The position numbers and the translations under genes were made by a program. Under the pieces are notes generated by a model. The model was not told where the DNA came from, searched no databases, and worked only from the letters and a program-made list of their open reading frames with translations. Shown in pieces: positions 6,312-60,161 of a stretch of DNA of 64,000 bases. The stretch lies in the sequence record PQ657772.1; one strand, given 5' to 3'. Numbering within the stretch: position 1 is the stretch's first letter; each line of letters starts with the position of its first letter.

Positions 6312-6397
6312 TCACTTCGTTCTCTCGTAACTCAAGAAGTCACTACGTTTACTTCGTAAACTAGTTCCTTCTGAAAATGATAATGTACTTTAAAAGC

Positions 6398-6966
6398 TTG
6401 ACGGGATTTGTTGAGGACTATTTCATCCCCCCGCAGGGGAATGAAGGTAATAAAAAAGAGACAATTAAGTCTCTCTTGACGATGATGGCATCGGATATTA
6501 TCGAATTGCGAATTTCTCAAATTTTGGACGGATCTTTCCTGTACCAAAATTTAGAGAGCGAAAGCGGGTTGCTCGGTTTCTCTCTATCGCAGTCATATGC
6601 AACGGTCGCTGGTCTTTTCATCAACAGCACTCAGTACTAAACTCTATTCGATCAAAGTAGTACCTGTTCTCAAATTTTGGACGCAACTTTCTTGTAAAAT
6701 CGCGTCCACAATCCTTGAACTCCCTTAGCAAATTCGTAAGGTGCGAACCTTATACATCTATCTAGGAACTCTCTGTGTGCTTATTGGAGTTCTTTATACA
6801 GCCGTGTCGCCGTGATTCGTGGTCTTATCTCGTGTTTGTTTGATTGCCAGTACTCTAACAGGTTTCTTTTGCTGTTCGCTACAACGGTAAAGCTCATCTA
6901 TCCTTTACATTTTCAAGAGAAGTAGGTTCTCATTATCCATTTTTCAATGTCCGTTGTCATTTTACA
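6398..6966 (-). ncRNA. putative large structured ncRNA, copy A (family unassigned)
   Basis: GC-elevated intergenic block sharing at least 8 collinear conserved blocks with 58749-59216; compensatory changes; G.U pairs only work on the minus strand; promoter at 6973-7000. Confidence 0.7.
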
Positions 6967-6972
6967 ATATAC

Positions 6973-7000
6973 ATTATATCACTAGGATGTATTATGTCCC
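6973..7000 (-). promoter_or_regulatory. promoter GGGACA-N13-TGA-TATAAT driving element A
   Basis: Read directly; same architecture at six other sites. Confidence 0.8.
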
Positions 7001-12900: not shown

Positions 12901-15630
12901 TTAATGCCAACGTGTACCAGAGCTTGAAGGAACACCAGAACTTGCAGGGATAGCAGAACCACGCTTAGTTGTACTAGGTCTGTATGTCAAGAATCGTGTT
13001 ACCTTTTCAGTATCAATTGACGTAATACTCGTACTTCCAGTAACAATATCACCAACATATACGTTTGTCAATGTCTCATCAAGAAGAGTTGTACTGATAA
13101 CGTATGCCGCTTTTCTTGTGTTACGGTTCATTTGAATGTAAAGATAAAAAGTACTGTTAGCTGGGTTAGTTTTAATAGTACTTAATTCTATGGTTTGAAT
13201 CGCTAATCTATCAAACATACCACCAAGGAATACCGGAACTTCACGGGTGAAGTACACAGTGAAACCTTCAGCAACATCTTGTGAAACTACTACGATTTTA
13301 TCTTGTACTGTTCCTGAACCATCAATCAACCCATCCATCTGTGTTGATGTTGTCCCAAAGAGACTAAACACTGCTTTAGTTTGATAATCTGAATCTTGAA
13401 GATGATAGTATCCAAATCCAACACCTGGTATAACTCCGTGCTGGAATGCATTGCCATTATCTATGTAGCTGGATGACATAAATCGGTTAGATGTAATCAA
13501 ACCATTCACTGTTTTAGCAATCATCAATTTGAATTGAGCATTACCAGGTTGTGAAAACTGATGAACTGCATCAACACCAATATAACCAAAACCAGAATAC
13601 TTAGCAACAGTTAGACCAGTACAGCGTTTCATATAGGCTTCGGTTACAATACCTGTTACAGAATTAAGTGTTTCGTATCTAGAACTCACCATAGACGCAG
13701 AACTAATATTGGTTCCTGAAACCGTGACATCAACTTCAGAATATATTGCATAACCTTGGTTATTGCCTAAGTTATATGCAGAAACCACCGCAATAGATTT
13801 TGAGAAAGAACTATCTGGTACATAATATAAAGCAATTTTACCAGAAAATGCTCCTACTATTCCAATATTAGCAAGTATTTCTTGTTTTAATGTTTCCAGA
13901 ACATTATCACCAATTGTATAAGAACCATCAAATTCTAAAGTATCTGGGTTAAACAAACCACCACTTGTTTTGTATACACCTTCAATGAATGATGTCCCAT
14001 AACATTTAACTGAACCGTCAGTATCAATTAATGAAATCATACCTGTATATTTGTAGTTGTCGCCGAGGCGAGTTCGGTTGGCTTGTGGTGCAAAACCATT
14101 AAGTGTTGTATTGTTTTGTACTGAATTGAACTGGAAGGTTGGATCAGTACCAATTTCAGAAAATACTGTATTGTTATAACCATATGACTCATCTTCATAT
14201 GTTCCAGAACATGCTAACAGTACTTTACGTTTATCAATAAAACGTGTTCCTAAAAGGTTTTCGCCTACTGCACTACCATATGTTGGTGCAACGTTTACAA
14301 ATTTGGAATTGTTCGCTTTACGAGTACTGGCAACCCAACTATCATATGGTGTTCCTGTTACGTTATAAACCTGAATACCATAGGTTTCAGATGAACTCCA
14401 ACGAGCACGTGTGCTGAATACTAAACCGTCATAGGTTTGGCATATAGAACCAACGTTGCCTAATTGCGGAACACCTAACTGTGTACCCATGAAGTTATTC
14501 ATCTCAATGGCAAATGGGTTTGTTAGTGTGAATCCATCAACATCATTATATTCCGCTGCTATTGGTGCTCTACTACTTCCATCAATTGATAATGATTTAG
14601 AGTTGATAGTATAAACAAAACTAAAACCACTAGCATAAACAGTACTAATATATAGATTTGATACTAAACGGTTAGTTGGGAATAATGTAATTCTAATCTT
14701 TGATAAATCTGGACTTACGTTTGCTTGTATATTATAATCTGTATAATCTGAATATTCAACTCGTGTAACTGGTGAAGTGCATTCAAATAATGAATCACTA
14801 CTAGTTCCAACTGAATATAATCTTTCATAAATTTTCAAATTATTAGCACTTGTGTAGTTAACACTTCTTAAGGTTTGACCAGAAAAACCAGTAACCTTAG
14901 CAAAAGTACTCATAGTACCATCTTTAATACTACTTGTATTAACAGTATATAATGTTAAAGCCAAACCATAGTTTGCTATAGTAGTGTCTTTGCACCACAC
15001 AAATACTTTATCATTAACGATATGTGCATACAATGGTTTATCTGTACCAAATGATGTAGCAGCGATAGAAGCGTGAATATGTGCAACTTCGTTAAATGTA
15101 CCATTTGTTAAAGTGAAAATATAATTACTTGCACTAGATAGGCTAACTAGTAATTCATAACCATTCGTTCCGATGAACTGTTTAACATTTTCAGTACTTG
15201 GAAGAATTCTCGGATGATATTTTGATGTAGTACTGATAACACTACTTTGTGTTAGTGCATCAATATTACGCAAATCACGAATGAATGCATAGTAATATCC
15301 TTCAGTACTACCATTTGTACCAGCACGTAATACCACACCAGTACCATCATCTTCGACTATTGTTGGTTGCATACGGTATACATCTGAAAGCGACGTTGCC
15401 CCTTCGTATGAACCATTAACGTTTAATGGTAGATAATCCATTTCCCCTATACGGGAGATTGGTAACATATCAAGTATTTTTTGAACTTCTGATCTTTTAT
15501 AAATTGGATAGTCAACAATACCTGTATTTGCGTCTGGTGCTGTACCATTAAAAGTACGCATAGCGTACTTTCCACCAATTGCCAAATTTCCAAGTATAGC
15601 AGCACTACCAATGATGCGTTTGGATGACAT
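12901..15630 (-). CDS. tail fibre/baseplate-associated structural protein (909 aa)
   Basis: Ser/Thr/Gly-rich beta-type composition; N- and C-termini shared with the two adjacent ORFs. Confidence 0.7.
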   Translation of the reverse strand: MSSKRIIGSAAILGNLAIGGKYAMRTFNGTAPDANTGIVDYPIYKRSEVQKILDMLPISRIGEMDYLPLNVNGSYEGATSLSDVYRMQPTIVEDDGTGVVLRAGTNGSTEGYYYAFIRDLRNIDALTQSSVISTTSKYHPRILPSTENVKQFIGTNGYELLVSLSSASNYIFTLTNGTFNEVAHIHASIAATSFGTDKPLYAHIVNDKVFVWCKDTTIANYGLALTLYTVNTSSIKDGTMSTFAKVTGFSGQTLRSVNYTSANNLKIYERLYSVGTSSDSLFECTSPVTRVEYSDYTDYNIQANVSPDLSKIRITLFPTNRLVSNLYISTVYASGFSFVYTINSKSLSIDGSSRAPIAAEYNDVDGFTLTNPFAIEMNNFMGTQLGVPQLGNVGSICQTYDGLVFSTRARWSSSETYGIQVYNVTGTPYDSWVASTRKANNSKFVNVAPTYGSAVGENLLGTRFIDKRKVLLACSGTYEDESYGYNNTVFSEIGTDPTFQFNSVQNNTTLNGFAPQANRTRLGDNYKYTGMISLIDTDGSVKCYGTSFIEGVYKTSGGLFNPDTLEFDGSYTIGDNVLETLKQEILANIGIVGAFSGKIALYYVPDSSFSKSIAVVSAYNLGNNQGYAIYSEVDVTVSGTNISSASMVSSRYETLNSVTGIVTEAYMKRCTGLTVAKYSGFGYIGVDAVHQFSQPGNAQFKLMIAKTVNGLITSNRFMSSSYIDNGNAFQHGVIPGVGFGYYHLQDSDYQTKAVFSLFGTTSTQMDGLIDGSGTVQDKIVVVSQDVAEGFTVYFTREVPVFLGGMFDRLAIQTIELSTIKTNPANSTFYLYIQMNRNTRKAAYVISTTLLDETLTNVYVGDIVTGSTSITSIDTEKVTRFLTYRPSTTKRGSAIPASSGVPSSSGTRWH

Positions 15631-57014: not shown

Positions 57015-57548
57015 TTATTTCCTCATGTATTTTATTACATCTTCAAATAGTTTAGTTTTCAGTGCATCATCATTACCAGGTAGAAAAGTACTGAAGCTAT
57101 TAAAATCTTCATTTTTGGCAAACTCACGCATCTGTGTGGAACTGTAGCGACTTACATTTCGGTCAATTCCAGCTTGAACTGCCTTGATTGAACAAAAATT
57201 ATATAACTTCCCATTGTACGTGTCAAGTGTTTTTTGGAATGGTTCAAGTCTATCTGAACCACATATGAAAAGAACATCTAAGTACTTTCCATCCAGTTCT
57301 CTCATTATATCAAACAGATTATCTTCTGTATAGATATTTTCTTGTACAGATGGGTAAAATCCTTCTGTATAGTACATTTTCAGTTCAGGAGGTAATGGGT
57401 TTTTGACGGCATCAGTACTGGTACTAAGGAATATTTTCAAATCAGCATTGTACTGTTCTTGTAGTGCTTGAGCTTTTTCAAACACTAAACCATGACCTCG
57501 ATGTACAGGGTTAATTCTTCCGAATGTCACTACGCATGTTTCTTTCAT
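57015..57548 (-). CDS. cytidylyltransferase/NMN adenylyltransferase-like (HxGH) protein
   Basis: FGRINPVHRGH, KNPL, CGSDR, SST.MR. Confidence 0.88.
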   Translation of the reverse strand: MKETCVVTFGRINPVHRGHGLVFEKAQALQEQYNADLKIFLSTSTDAVKNPLPPELKMYYTEGFYPSVQENIYTEDNLFDIMRELDGKYLDVLFICGSDRLEPFQKTLDTYNGKLYNFCSIKAVQAGIDRNVSRYSSTQMREFAKNEDFNSFSTFLPGNDDALKTKLFEDVIKYMRK

Positions 57549-58069
57549 ATGTTCTTCATCACCTGACCAATAGATTTAAGATGGTTGATTTTAGCTGGAG
57601 TCAAATACTTATCCAGTACTATTAAACAACTAGGGAATGGAGCACTGTCAGTCTTTTTATCTGGTTCTTCAGGGATACCGAACTTTAAGCGACCTTTTAT
57701 AAAACAAATACAATCACAAACTTTCGCAGCATAATCCTGAAAGGCTATAGTATCAGTTCTTGATGGTACGAGAATCAGTACTGTAGCACCTTTGTTATAT
57801 GCATCAACTGCCTTAGATAACCACGTTTTCAAATCACTGTACGGTGGGTTGAGCCACACGATATTGTTTCCCCAGTCCTGTTCAAGTGAATTGTCTTCTG
57901 GTGTAAAGAACTTATCACACAATGCAGTTTCTTTGACACACGCTGCATCTAGTGTAAATTCCCAGAGTTCATCCAAATCTTCAAAGAAATCCTTTGGAGT
58001 AGTCCAGTTATCTTTTCCAGTACTGAAATGTACTGATTGTTTTTTCTTCGAAGCATCCTTCTTCGACAT
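57545..58069 (-). CDS. phage-type DNA N6-adenine methyltransferase
   Basis: W.TP..FF..L...F.LD, WLNPPYS, LVPSRTDT, FIKGRLKF, APFPS. Confidence 0.9.
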   Translation of the reverse strand: MSKKDASKKKQSVHFSTGKDNWTTPKDFFEDLDELWEFTLDAACVKETALCDKFFTPEDNSLEQDWGNNIVWLNPPYSDLKTWLSKAVDAYNKGATVLILVPSRTDTIAFQDYAAKVCDCICFIKGRLKFGIPEEPDKKTDSAPFPSCLIVLDKYLTPAKINHLKSIGQVMKNI

Positions 58070-58689: not shown

Positions 58690-58718
58690 ATTATACACGC
58701 TTCGCATGTCTAATTCAA
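58690..58718 (-). promoter_or_regulatory. sigma70-type promoter TTGAAT-N17-TATAAT downstream of element B
   Basis: Read directly. Confidence 0.6.
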
Positions 58719-58748: not shown

Positions 58749-59280
58749 TTGACGGGGTTTGCTTGAGCATATTTCATCCCCCCGCAGGGGAAAGAACAAA
58801 AAAAGTTTGACGCTGGTGGCCTTCACATAGTTCATATCACGAATTCTCTTACGAGGCGAAAGCGGGTTGCTCTGTTTCTCTCTATCGCGGTTCTTGTAGC
58901 AACGGTCGTCGGTCTTAAACATCCCGACACATAATACAAATACCATATGACCAGTACTTGTATTTGATTTCACGAATTTTGGACGCAACTATATTGTATA
59001 AATTACGACCGCAAATTTCTCATGAAATCTCCCTTAGATAATTGGTAAGGTGCGATCCTTATATGTCTATCGAGGAACTCTCTTTATCCTATTGGAGTTC
59101 TTTATACAGCCGCATTGCCGTGAGTGGTTCAAACTATGCCATCATCTAACGGGTTTCATTTGCTGTTCGTACTGAAAGGACTACTCATCTACCCTCTACT
59201 TTTCGAGTGGATTAGGCTTTAATCATTTCCATATGGAACCTTTCAGGATTAAAAAAAGGCGACAACATATTCTGCTGTCA
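58749..59280 (-). ncRNA. putative large structured ncRNA, copy B (homologue of 6398-6966)
   Basis: Same conserved blocks in the same order; covariation with copy A; promoter at 59287-59314. Confidence 0.7.
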
Positions 59281-59282
59281 CC
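59251..59282 (-). terminator. terminator-like hairpin at the 5' end of element B
   Basis: GGTGACAGCA-GAATA-TGTTGTCGCC followed by T7. Confidence 0.65.
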
Positions 59283-59286
59283 TTAC

Positions 59287-59314
59287 ATTATATCATAAAC
59301 TTATGGTCTGTCTC
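59287..59314 (-). promoter_or_regulatory. promoter GAGACA-N13-TGA-TATAAT upstream of element B
   Basis: Read directly. Confidence 0.75.
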
Positions 59315-60161
59315 AGTTGTATTCTGTTTTTTCAGTGAAATTAGTTAAGATATCTGCACTTAAGCTTCTCATAACCTCAATCTTACTTGGCATGAACCTG
59401 TGCTTGTTTTTTACATACAACTCATCATCTTCAATGAAAGATGTGAACATGAATACCATATCTTCACGTGGAATTGAGAGAATATTACAGTTTTCATTTT
59501 CAGCAACAGGGGAATCATTGTAGTACTTAGAGAATGCAGTACTTTGACGACCGATTATGATAGAATTTCGGATTAGAAAATTACTACAGTACTGAAAATC
59601 TTTGTAGTACTTGTCAAGGATATATGGCATTATCGCTTCTTTCACTTCTTCATATCCATTGGTACTATCAATTTCAGTACAATAATCTTCTCGGTCTTTT
59701 TTCCCTCGATGATTATCAAACTCGTACTCAAAGAATAAATTTTCATTTAATGAATCATTTGAACCAACTGATCCACTATAGTATGATTTTCTATCATTCA
59801 TTCGATCATCCGGGCATGATGCATACATAGAAATGTCATGTGTTGACGTACCGATATAAATTTTCTTAGTAATGTGATTGTACGCGATGTAATCATAATC
59901 TTGTACTCCAGTTAGCATTAACTGGAACATCAATTCATCAGGAACATCAATTAACGGGTACTCAAACTTCGAATATCTACTACGACAGAAATTCTTTTCA
60001 AATGCTCGATATGCGATGAAATCTTTTAGGTTTGTAATAGATTCATGCTCATGTGTACTACTGGTGCGTACATTGACATTAGTAGACGAGCAATACCCTT
60101 CAGATTCTTCTGCGTAGTCATAATAACCCTTACTGTAGTCAACGATTAGATAAAGTTTCAT
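59313..60161 (-). CDS. hypothetical protein (FQL motif family)
   Basis: PDELMFQLMLTG. Confidence 0.75.
   Translation of the reverse strand: MKLYLIVDYSKGYYDYAEESEGYCSSTNVNVRTSSTHEHESITNLKDFIAYRAFEKNFCRSRYSKFEYPLIDVPDELMFQLMLTGVQDYDYIAYNHITKKIYIGTSTHDISMYASCPDDRMNDRKSYYSGSVGSNDSLNENLFFEYEFDNHRGKKDREDYCTEIDSTNGYEEVKEAIMPYILDKYYKDFQYCSNFLIRNSIIIGRQSTAFSKYYNDSPVAENENCNILSIPREDMVFMFTSFIEDDELYVKNKHRFMPSKIEVMRSLSADILTNFTEKTEYN

Follow-up and report, generated by a model that had tools for sequence, protein, structure and literature searches.

A ~0.5-kb segment on the minus strand of sequence record PQ657772.1, element B (~59283-58749), is predicted to be a non-coding RNA (ncRNA) gene and is almost certainly one of four paralogous, independently promoted genes of this kind (D, C, A and B) in its genome. 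Their RNAs have a conserved, doubly pseudoknotted fold, are common to RaK2-like jumbo phages and to integrative islands (where they occur as single copies), and come without a cognate protein or an Rfam match. Positions are those of the 64,000-nucleotide (nt) stretch analysed, hereafter the window, unless another record is named. The record is that of Escherichia phage EC.P1, a 356-kb Asteriusvirus jumbo phage, and a window position equals the EC.P1 record position minus 248,000. Element B and its flanks are 100% identical to EC.P1 and 95-99.7% identical to other Asteriusvirus genomes (121Q, PBECO4, G17, Sharanji). GC content of the window is 34.6% and nearly all of its long open reading frames (ORFs) are on the minus strand.

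Structure and parts of the RNA

The family is a structured RNA with strong covariation. Copies were collected from phage genomes, IMG/VR (using two independent motifs), metagenomes and bacterial genomes, and 41 distinct copies make up the alignment, A3. The structure model, 70 pairs in 15 helices, combines the RNAalifold consensus with two pseudoknots (PK1 and PK2) taken from an all-against-all covariation scan; hairpins in A3 columns 330-410 are poorly resolved. Compensatory changes are found in 42 of the 67 pairs of the RNAalifold consensus. Under the 70-pair model 96.4% of paired cells are satisfied, against 75.3 ± 0.5% in shuffled alignments (none of 500 reached it) and 36-48% after sliding the partner by 1-3 columns. 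The covariation score behaves likewise (0.607, against 0.216 shuffled and 0.07-0.13 slid by 1-3 columns), as do changes on both sides of a pair, seen at 49 of 70 pairs against 39.5 ± 2.0 shuffled (0/500 as high) and 11-21 slid.

PK1 gave the top covariation of the whole scan, with five of its seven pairs changed on both sides and 99.3% of cells paired. In PK2, 19 of 40 copies have U-A in place of C-G, and copy D reads GUCAU/AUGAC, with three compensated pairs. Copies outside model building also fit: copy D at 53 of 66 pairs, its addition to the alignment having shifted the register somewhat, and island copies at 88-100% of pairs, with new PK1 variants (UUUAUGU/ACAUAAA and UUCAUAC/GUAUGAA). The fold of B has a z-score of -2.99 against shuffles. 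G-U pairs are present on the gene strand only, which fixes the strand of the RNA. A closing helix ACG/CGU proposed by RNAalifold was left out of the model, being invariant and broken in RaK2. The parts of element B are as follows, all on the minus strand.

59287-59316, predicted promoter: -35-like box CTGAGA/GAGACA at 59316-59309 and extended -10
59295-59287, extended -10: TG at 59295-59294 and TATAAT at 59292-59287 (consensus scan, 10 of 12 matches with TG)
Near 59283-59280, predicted transcription start
59249-59284, 5′ hairpin and U7 run, with 12 bp at 59284-59256 (terminator scan)
59075-59246, 5′ domain, helices H1-H6 (RNAalifold and pair counts, 41 copies)
59246-59239/59179-59172, H1
59238-59235/59230-59227, H2
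59210-59205/59196-59192, H3, loop GAAAAGUA
59166-59162/59110-59106, H4
59152-59149/59121-59118, H5
59100-59096/59079-59075, H6
59061-59046, hairpin 1, UAAGG-AUCGCA-CCUUA, within 59028-59062; first hairpin of the original prediction
59035-59029, invariant AAGGGAG block after hairpin 1
58831-58963, 3′ core domain with PK1 and PK2
58951-58945 with 58837-58831, PK1: loop GUCAUAU of the hairpin 58963-58933 paired with AUAUGAA
58929-58926/58911-58907, H10
58903-58899 with 58870-58866, PK2: GUUGC paired with GCAAC
58889-58885/58842-58838, H12
58882-58878/58862-58858, H13
58855-58853/58848-58846, H14
58798-58821, site 1, GGCCACCAGCGUCAAA, with CGUCAA at 58812-58807; end of the core (alignment)
58804-58798, U7 run after site 1, with no terminator stem in B
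58772-58797, 3′ hairpin, GUUCUUUCCCC-UGCG-GGGGGGAUGAAA, which includes the second hairpin of the original prediction (58791-58777)
58749-58763, site 2, AGCAAACCCCGUCAA, with CGUCAA at 58754-58749; last conserved block of the element
58690-58718, outside element B: predicted sigma-70-like promoter of the next gene, TTGAAT-17-TATAAT (consensus scan)

Within the 5′ domain both-sided changes occur at 26 of 31 pairs across the 41 copies, and the stem of hairpin 1 covaries as UAAGG/CCUUA, UAGG/CCUA and UGAG/CUCA. Upstream, the TGnTATAAT box and a TGRRAC-like -35 are kept in all 43 copies aligned there. Elements A and B had been assigned the same promoter class, and a -35-like box with TG/TATAAT was indeed found at B; the class is generic to the phage. 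Of 18 TGnTATAAT boxes in the window, 17 are on the gene strand, so the promoter of A and B is the phage's general host-polymerase class. From the predicted start to site 2 there are 535 nt in B and ~578 nt in A. The 5′ hairpin with its U-run, where a terminator is annotated in G17, is kept in B-type and 94k-type copies and missing from A; it resembles a terminator, one that probably belongs to the upstream gene, and is also the 5′ end of the B RNA.

A protein-coding reading was rejected, given that indels are not multiples of three and that no ORF is conserved: the longest ones (26-81 aa) have inconsistent start positions among copies. The frame and stop of the short ORF at GGGGGGAUG are likewise unconserved. 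From the AUG of GGGGGGAUGAAA (58782-58742) it reads MKLHQQISSV* in locus L004 and MQMDQQTPSV* in the 94k type; at the equivalent place A reads AUG AAA UAG, AAG stands in D, and in the 260k type there is a shift of 1 nt.

Rfam 15 gave no match at gathering threshold anywhere in the window, with families such as ROOL, GOLLD, OLE, group I and II introns, RNase P, tmRNA, 6S, HEARO and STAXI among those covered. At E ≤ 10 elements A and B returned chance-level matches only (E of 2 or more), and twelve other loci with divergent copies gave nothing on the element. The window has no tRNA or tmRNA by a dedicated scan. Across the loci with copies, existing annotation reads "hypothetical protein" or is missing, and the RNA family is undescribed in the searchable literature on jumbo-phage ncRNAs and ornate RNAs, including ncRNA-mining preprints of 2026. 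Two ncRNAs of the related jumbo phage PA5oct, ncRNA001 and ncRNA002, were detected by RNA-seq (PMC7318152); considered as relatives, they (L055:1264-1499 and 14952-15402) proved not to be homologous to the family.

Copies in jumbo phages and integrative islands

Element B had been described as a diverged second copy of element A, located on the same strand of the window with these features:

6395-6981, minus strand: element A, paralogue of B, with an extended -10 at 6981-6973
6481-6476, minus strand: site 1, CGUCAA
~6475-6452, minus strand: terminator hairpin and U-run
6446-6421, minus strand: 3′ hairpin
6403-6398, minus strand: site 2, CGUCAA

The homology spans the whole length (nhmmer in two directions, E of 1e-50 and 6.8e-51), and pairwise alignment places all blocks of A in the same order in B with variable inserts; as described, A has hairpins that B lacks, namely an enlarged hairpin, an extra ~37-nt hairpin module and the terminator hairpin. 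We also noticed a ~30-nt RNA module, UACAAUAUAG-AUCCGUCC-AAAAUUUGAG, of which a copy has none, one or two, inserted at either of two points in the fold (6557-6520 in A; A3 columns ~365-395 and ~525-560 in other copies). A second instance in element A is a 9-bp hairpin, AAAUUUUGG/CCAAAAUUU.

A and B are the sole copies in the window by nhmmer, in agreement with the original prediction; its count of two, though, does not extend to the genome, which holds four. Positions in the EC.P1 record are:

56.8-57.3 kb, minus strand: copy D
~172 kb, minus strand: copy C, inferred from its G17 and 121Q orthologues
254.4-255.0 kb, minus strand: copy A, in the window
306.7-307.3 kb, minus strand: copy B, in the window

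By BLAST, each Asteriusvirus genome has four copies and Eneladus-, Mimas- and 7t3-like phages have five, the latter infecting Erwinia, Serratia, Yersinia, Pectobacterium, Cronobacter, Salmonella, Klebsiella aerogenes and Xanthomonas. In RaK2 there are at least two copies, one of them a diverged B-type copy in the syntenic position. The argument that two maintained paralogues indicate function is borne out and can be extended. Copies of one paralogue type group together across phage genera, in a clade of their own, and occupy syntenic sites with neighbours kept. B-type copies are followed by a hypothetical gene, a Dam-like methylase and a cytidylyltransferase; C-type copies neighbour endonuclease VII, gp46/47 and the late sigma factor. 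Clades that cross genera with conserved neighbours imply that the duplications predate the genera and that every copy was retained.

As to the neighbourhoods themselves, the Dam-like methylase region lies at 57545-58069, downstream of element B. An adenine methyltransferase cluster comes after the B-type copy in all genera examined, and an adenine methyltransferase also follows the C-type copy of Yen9-04 (L156:5631-6437). Elsewhere in EC.P1, ~14 tandem plus-strand genes of 340-450 aa stand among minus-strand genes at 16.9-33.5 kb (L051:16897-33490) and look like a paralogue array; 2 kb of the same genome (L051:10013-11996) have no annotated gene and, by nhmmer, no copy of the RNA.

All copies of a genome are on one strand in the 12 of 12 genomes tabulated. 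Where there are five copies, they are spaced evenly by a post hoc min-gap test against random points on a circle:

BF, 357 kb: copies at 30.5, 93.0, 174.5, 258.8 and 335.3 kb; post hoc min-gap p 0.005
GAP32, 359 kb: copies at 35.1, 98.8, 177.5, 261.9 and 340.7 kb; post hoc min-gap p 0.005
CBB, 378 kb: copies at 32.3, 94.3, 174.4, 258.1 and 336.3 kb; post hoc min-gap p 0.001
7t3-like, 366 kb: copies at 41.0, 107.9, 187.9, 269.3 and 332.5 kb; post hoc min-gap p 0.0003

The suggestion that B is not just a 5′ untranslated region, made from the separate promoter of the next gene (the match at 58718-58690 stands), gains support from copies elsewhere. In G17, copy C is antisense between two plus-strand genes and points into the 3′ ends of convergent genes, which makes it a stand-alone gene and not a leader, and island copies face convergent genes too. 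A riboswitch or cis-regulatory leader was rejected: downstream genes are unrelated, the gene after B has its own promoter and some copies have no co-oriented downstream gene. A ToxI-like type III toxin-antitoxin was also discarded, with no conserved neighbour gene and no tandem repeats in the aligned copies (for which no dedicated repeat scan was made).

The RNA core is followed, in order, by site 1 (AYCAYCGUCAR), a terminator in some types, a hairpin and site 2 (AAAYCYCGUCAR). This 3′ module is an obligatory companion of the core, always linked to it and often placed behind a terminator. A search with the 3′ motif found the RNA at 47 of 47 loci, several of which are cut off by the locus end, and all true hits of the core motif whose 3′ end lies inside the locus extend to the last profile positions. 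An intrinsic terminator follows site 1 in about half of the paralogue types; B has a U-run only and the 336k type nothing. The two sites co-vary in the same sense, with the R position (G or A) concordant in 74 of 79 distinct copies and the Y positions set by paralogue type (AUCAUC/AUCUC versus ACCACC/ACCCC); RaK2 has CUUCA at both. A search for a conserved further sequence that could pair with both sites, in the manner of P4 or of a guide, found none. The stem of the 3′ hairpin (helix 15) has 10-11 bp in most copies and an invariant 3′ arm, GGGGGAUGAA. Its 5′ arm changes only from C to U opposite G, with no two-sided covariation, a pattern consistent with RNA pairing, albeit not proof of it.

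Beyond site 2, a TATAAT/TATAAA-like hexamer and an AGTAY box are present in B (58748-58725), in A (6397-6380) and in most other loci, and may be an outward-facing middle or late promoter. A hairpin with a ACGAAGUGA-like loop then stands before the next gene in many loci.

Outside phages, the core motif matched nine bacterial assemblies, and BLAST found the RNA in two of 5,426 complete E. coli genomes. Island copies are single and carry the whole unit from promoter to site 2; they are found ~0.1-0.7 kb from an integrase or at one extremity of an enterobacterial integrative island of ~10 kb. Three islands were delimited:

L152:5211-14916, Citrobacter amalonaticus P55
L154:5909-16417, Enterobacter chinensis
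L151:15997-26341, E. coli LR-29-1, between ffs and ybaA

The Citrobacter and Enterobacter islands are inserted in the ppdD pilin gene and share the order large serine recombinase, RNA, convergent cI-like S24 repressor, HTH_35, unknown genes and small resolvase. One has GmrSD as cargo, the other DarTG and a helicase (DarT being accompanied by an ADP-ribosyl-glycohydrolase and a UvrD-like helicase). The E. coli LR-29-1 island has a tyrosine integrase split by IS3 and the candidate defence genes PDC-M45 and PDC-S16. In Serratia fonticola the RNA lies at the edge of the island, after a serine recombinase and two ParB-like genes and on the other strand. Eleven metagenome loci repeat the layout int-RNA-cI-HTH35-p286. 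The island RNAs fall into at least three clades, interleaved with the phage paralogue clades. That no cognate protein travels with the element, as first proposed, agrees with the unrelated proteins flanking A and B (best blastp E 0.43) and with the two island proteins tested, p286 and a 165-aa protein, neither of which has a homologue in 50,697 phage records. The islands could be jumbo-phage satellites. A match to the Rfam STnc450 sRNA directly upstream of an island tyrosine integrase (L061:4270-4326) may be an integration target.

What the element may do

A cis-acting, genome-distributed role, with all cis options taken together, stands at about even odds. It is favoured by the retention of paralogues at fixed sites, on a uniform strand and with even spacing; by the conserved module behind terminators and the identity of the two sites within a locus; and by the whole unit having been captured, more than once, by islands with no tested protein in common with the phages. 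Among the cis options, an RNA-dependent element of DNA metabolism, likeliest an RNA-primed or R-loop replication start, ranks first in view of the host polymerase promoter, the lack of a dedicated protein, the predicted transcript of 535-580 nt and the G-run near the conserved end. By analogy with known origins we give it a probability of roughly 0.3. In such a mechanism, host RNA polymerase would initiate at the constitutive extended -10, giving an RNA of ~500 nt that would then fold; transcripts reaching the 3′ module, with its hairpin of a G6-run and then CGUCAR, would stay on the template and offer a 3′ end for DNA synthesis. The identity of sites 1 and 2 would serve to define or realign this 3′ end, and islands carrying the unit would be replicated by the infecting jumbo phage. 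We speculate, more doubtfully still, that the family is a new kind of replication start or genome-organising site, evenly spaced, strand-uniform and requiring a doubly pseudoknotted RNA of ~500 nt made in situ by host polymerase, which defence islands pirated several times to be replicated by, or to interfere with, the jumbo phage. If the unit was pirated in this way, the islands would be the first known satellites or parasites of RaK2-like jumbo phages.

Several observations weigh against a replication start. GC skew has no inflection at A or B, and a scan of the strand opposite to B (58749-59283) found no sigma-70-like site from which an RNA I-like regulator could be made. About half of the paralogue types have a strong terminator between core and 3′ module, which would abort most primer transcripts. 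The RNA is missing from 72,556 plasmids, which makes a host-only ColE1-like origin unlikely. The LR-29-1 island has iteron-like ATCGATCGTT repeats of its own (L151:20990-21060, ~400 nt downstream of the RNA and upstream of a 257-aa gene), which may be its replication origin. The spacing test is post hoc, the genomes in it are syntenic and thus amount to roughly one evolutionary observation, and the four copies of Asteriusvirus are weakly even (p = 0.07). Two pseudoknots and many invariant unpaired bases also seem to exceed what a primer precursor needs and to fit better a trans-acting ornate RNA or a ribozyme.

The last point leads to the foremost alternative, a serious candidate though well short of even odds: an ornate RNA acting in trans, made early and abundantly by host RNA polymerase from four or five copies, that would act on a host factor, as a ribozyme or as an RNA-only particle like ROOL and GOLLD. 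The 3′ module would then just set or protect the 3′ end, and islands would keep the RNA as a decoy or for the same benefit. The elaborate conserved fold with its two pseudoknots and long invariant unpaired blocks suits this proposal, as do a strong promoter for each copy and, in many, a terminator. So does the lack of a partner protein nearby or common to phages and islands, which also means that any partner would be host-encoded. Large phage RNAs that form RNA-only assemblies have precedent (PMC12286853). Action in trans nevertheless leaves unexplained the even spacing and uniform strand, the long retention of every paralogue at a fixed syntenic site, the obligatory module behind terminators and the same-sense co-variation of the two sites of a locus.

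The unit could instead modify the RNA polymerase transcribing it, in the manner of HK022 put or lambda qut/tR′, or mark loading sites for late transcription, so that long operons of a 350-kb genome are read through terminators. We consider this unlikely. Its layout of promoter, RNA, terminator and conserved sequence is the expected one, a spacing of ~50-85 kb on a uniform strand suits control at operon scale, and many copies have the TATAAT/TATAAA-like hexamer after site 2. However, the arrangement of promoter, RNA and co-oriented operon holds in B-like contexts and fails at copy C, which in G17 points into convergent genes, and at island copies, which run into convergent ParB or cI genes; the gene after B has its own promoter; and at 500 nt the RNA is about seven times the size of known put RNAs.

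It is very unlikely that conservation concerns DNA only, the RNA being incidental to a recombination or nick site or to a non-autonomous mobile element such as a miniature transposon with a CGTCAR target duplication. Direct repeats do flank the terminator and hairpin segment, and there were at least three moves between phages and islands. Yet the pervasive compensatory changes, with G-U on one strand only, reveal a selected single-stranded fold; the promoter upstream is invariant, the sites are fixed and syntenic rather than scattered insertions, and there are no terminal inverted repeats.

Least probable of all, and by our estimate close to nil, is the model of the original prediction, by which the UCGCA and UGCGG loops of two invariant long hairpins kiss and drive folding or heteromeric assembly of the paralogous RNAs. 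Both hairpins lie at 59061-59046 and 58791-58777 and are identical in A and B but for one loop base; they are invariant between A, B and close relatives but not across the family, and "long" fits poorly a first stem of only 5 bp and a second whose 10-11 bp of most copies are reduced and broken up in B. In Asteriusvirus, loop complementarity extends over 4 nt in B and C and over 3 nt in A as folded, but just 6 of 41 copies, for the most part closely related to B, reach 4 nt or more, and such a loss across homologues had itself been named as refuting the contact. Hairpin 1 loops include AUCGCA (only in B-type and Asteriusvirus copies), AUACUA, AUGCA, GUCA, AUGCAUA and GCAU; those of the 3′ hairpin include UGCG, UUUU, UUUC, CUGU, AGC, CAGU, UUGC and more. 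Even B-type orthologues (XbC2, GAP32, 7t3) set UUUC, CUGU or CCUGU opposite AUCGCA or AUUCGCA. Evidently, the two loops vary freely and independently across the 41 copies, in place of the maintained, covarying complementarity of kissing loops of the phi29 pRNA or HIV DIS type.

Comparison with known systems

Few large, intricately folded RNAs without an assigned function are known from bacteria or phages, and every one of them has led to new biology. The present RNA is found in E. coli phages that can be cultivated, including the Asteriusvirus Sharanji, isolated on E. coli K-12 MG1655 according to its database record, and is therefore directly testable. Its layout bears on how replication begins, or transcription is organised, in 350-kb phages dependent on the host polymerase; that defence-carrying islands have captured it bears on whether jumbo phages have satellites.

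ROOL and GOLLD are large ornate RNAs of phages and prophages (PMC12286853). Like them, the present RNA is phage-borne, ~0.5 kb or larger and highly structured, with invariant unpaired nucleotides, pseudoknots and no adjacent partner protein. Unlike them, it matches neither Rfam model in sequence or structure, belongs to phages of Gram-negative enterobacterial hosts, has an obligatory 3′ DNA/RNA module and is shared with integrative islands. ROOL and GOLLD come as one copy near tRNAs, whereas here there are four or five dispersed, evenly spaced paralogues and no tRNA in the window.

With HK022 put and the PR′-qut-tR′ 6S transcript of lambda the family shares a structured RNA just after a strong promoter, then a terminator, at several places per phage genome. 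It differs from put in being ~seven times larger and in having copies, namely copy C and those of islands, with no co-oriented downstream operon.

The immunity region of satellite P4 makes CI RNA and has repeated sites, seqA and seqC, whose complement lies within that RNA. A constitutive promoter, a structured RNA (processed in P4), two repeated sites of the same sense and residence in a small integrative element are common to both; however, no internal partner complementary to the sites was found here, and the RNA is ~7-8 times larger than CI RNA.

ColE1 RNA II and the T4 R-loop origins ori(uvsY) and ori(34) combine a constitutive host-polymerase promoter with an RNA-primed start that needs no element-encoded protein. 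RNA II and the present RNA, a predicted transcript of 535-580 nt, are similar in length, constitutive promoter and conserved end point, and a G-run near the conserved 3′ end is shared with ColE1 and T4 origins alike, as is the presence of the unit in small elements with no recognisable initiator. Several copies per large T4-like genome are a further resemblance to the T4 origins. On the other side, there is no homology, no antisense RNA I promoter was found in B, the RNA is missing from the 72,556 plasmids searched, many copies have terminators, and the tertiary structure is far more elaborate.

Precedents thus exist for a large structured phage RNA and none for the even spacing of multiple paralogues, the two-site 3′ module and the sharing with defence islands. 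In this company the promoter-driven, doubly pseudoknotted ~0.5-kb RNA genes, with their obligatory 3′ module, firmly constitute a new family.

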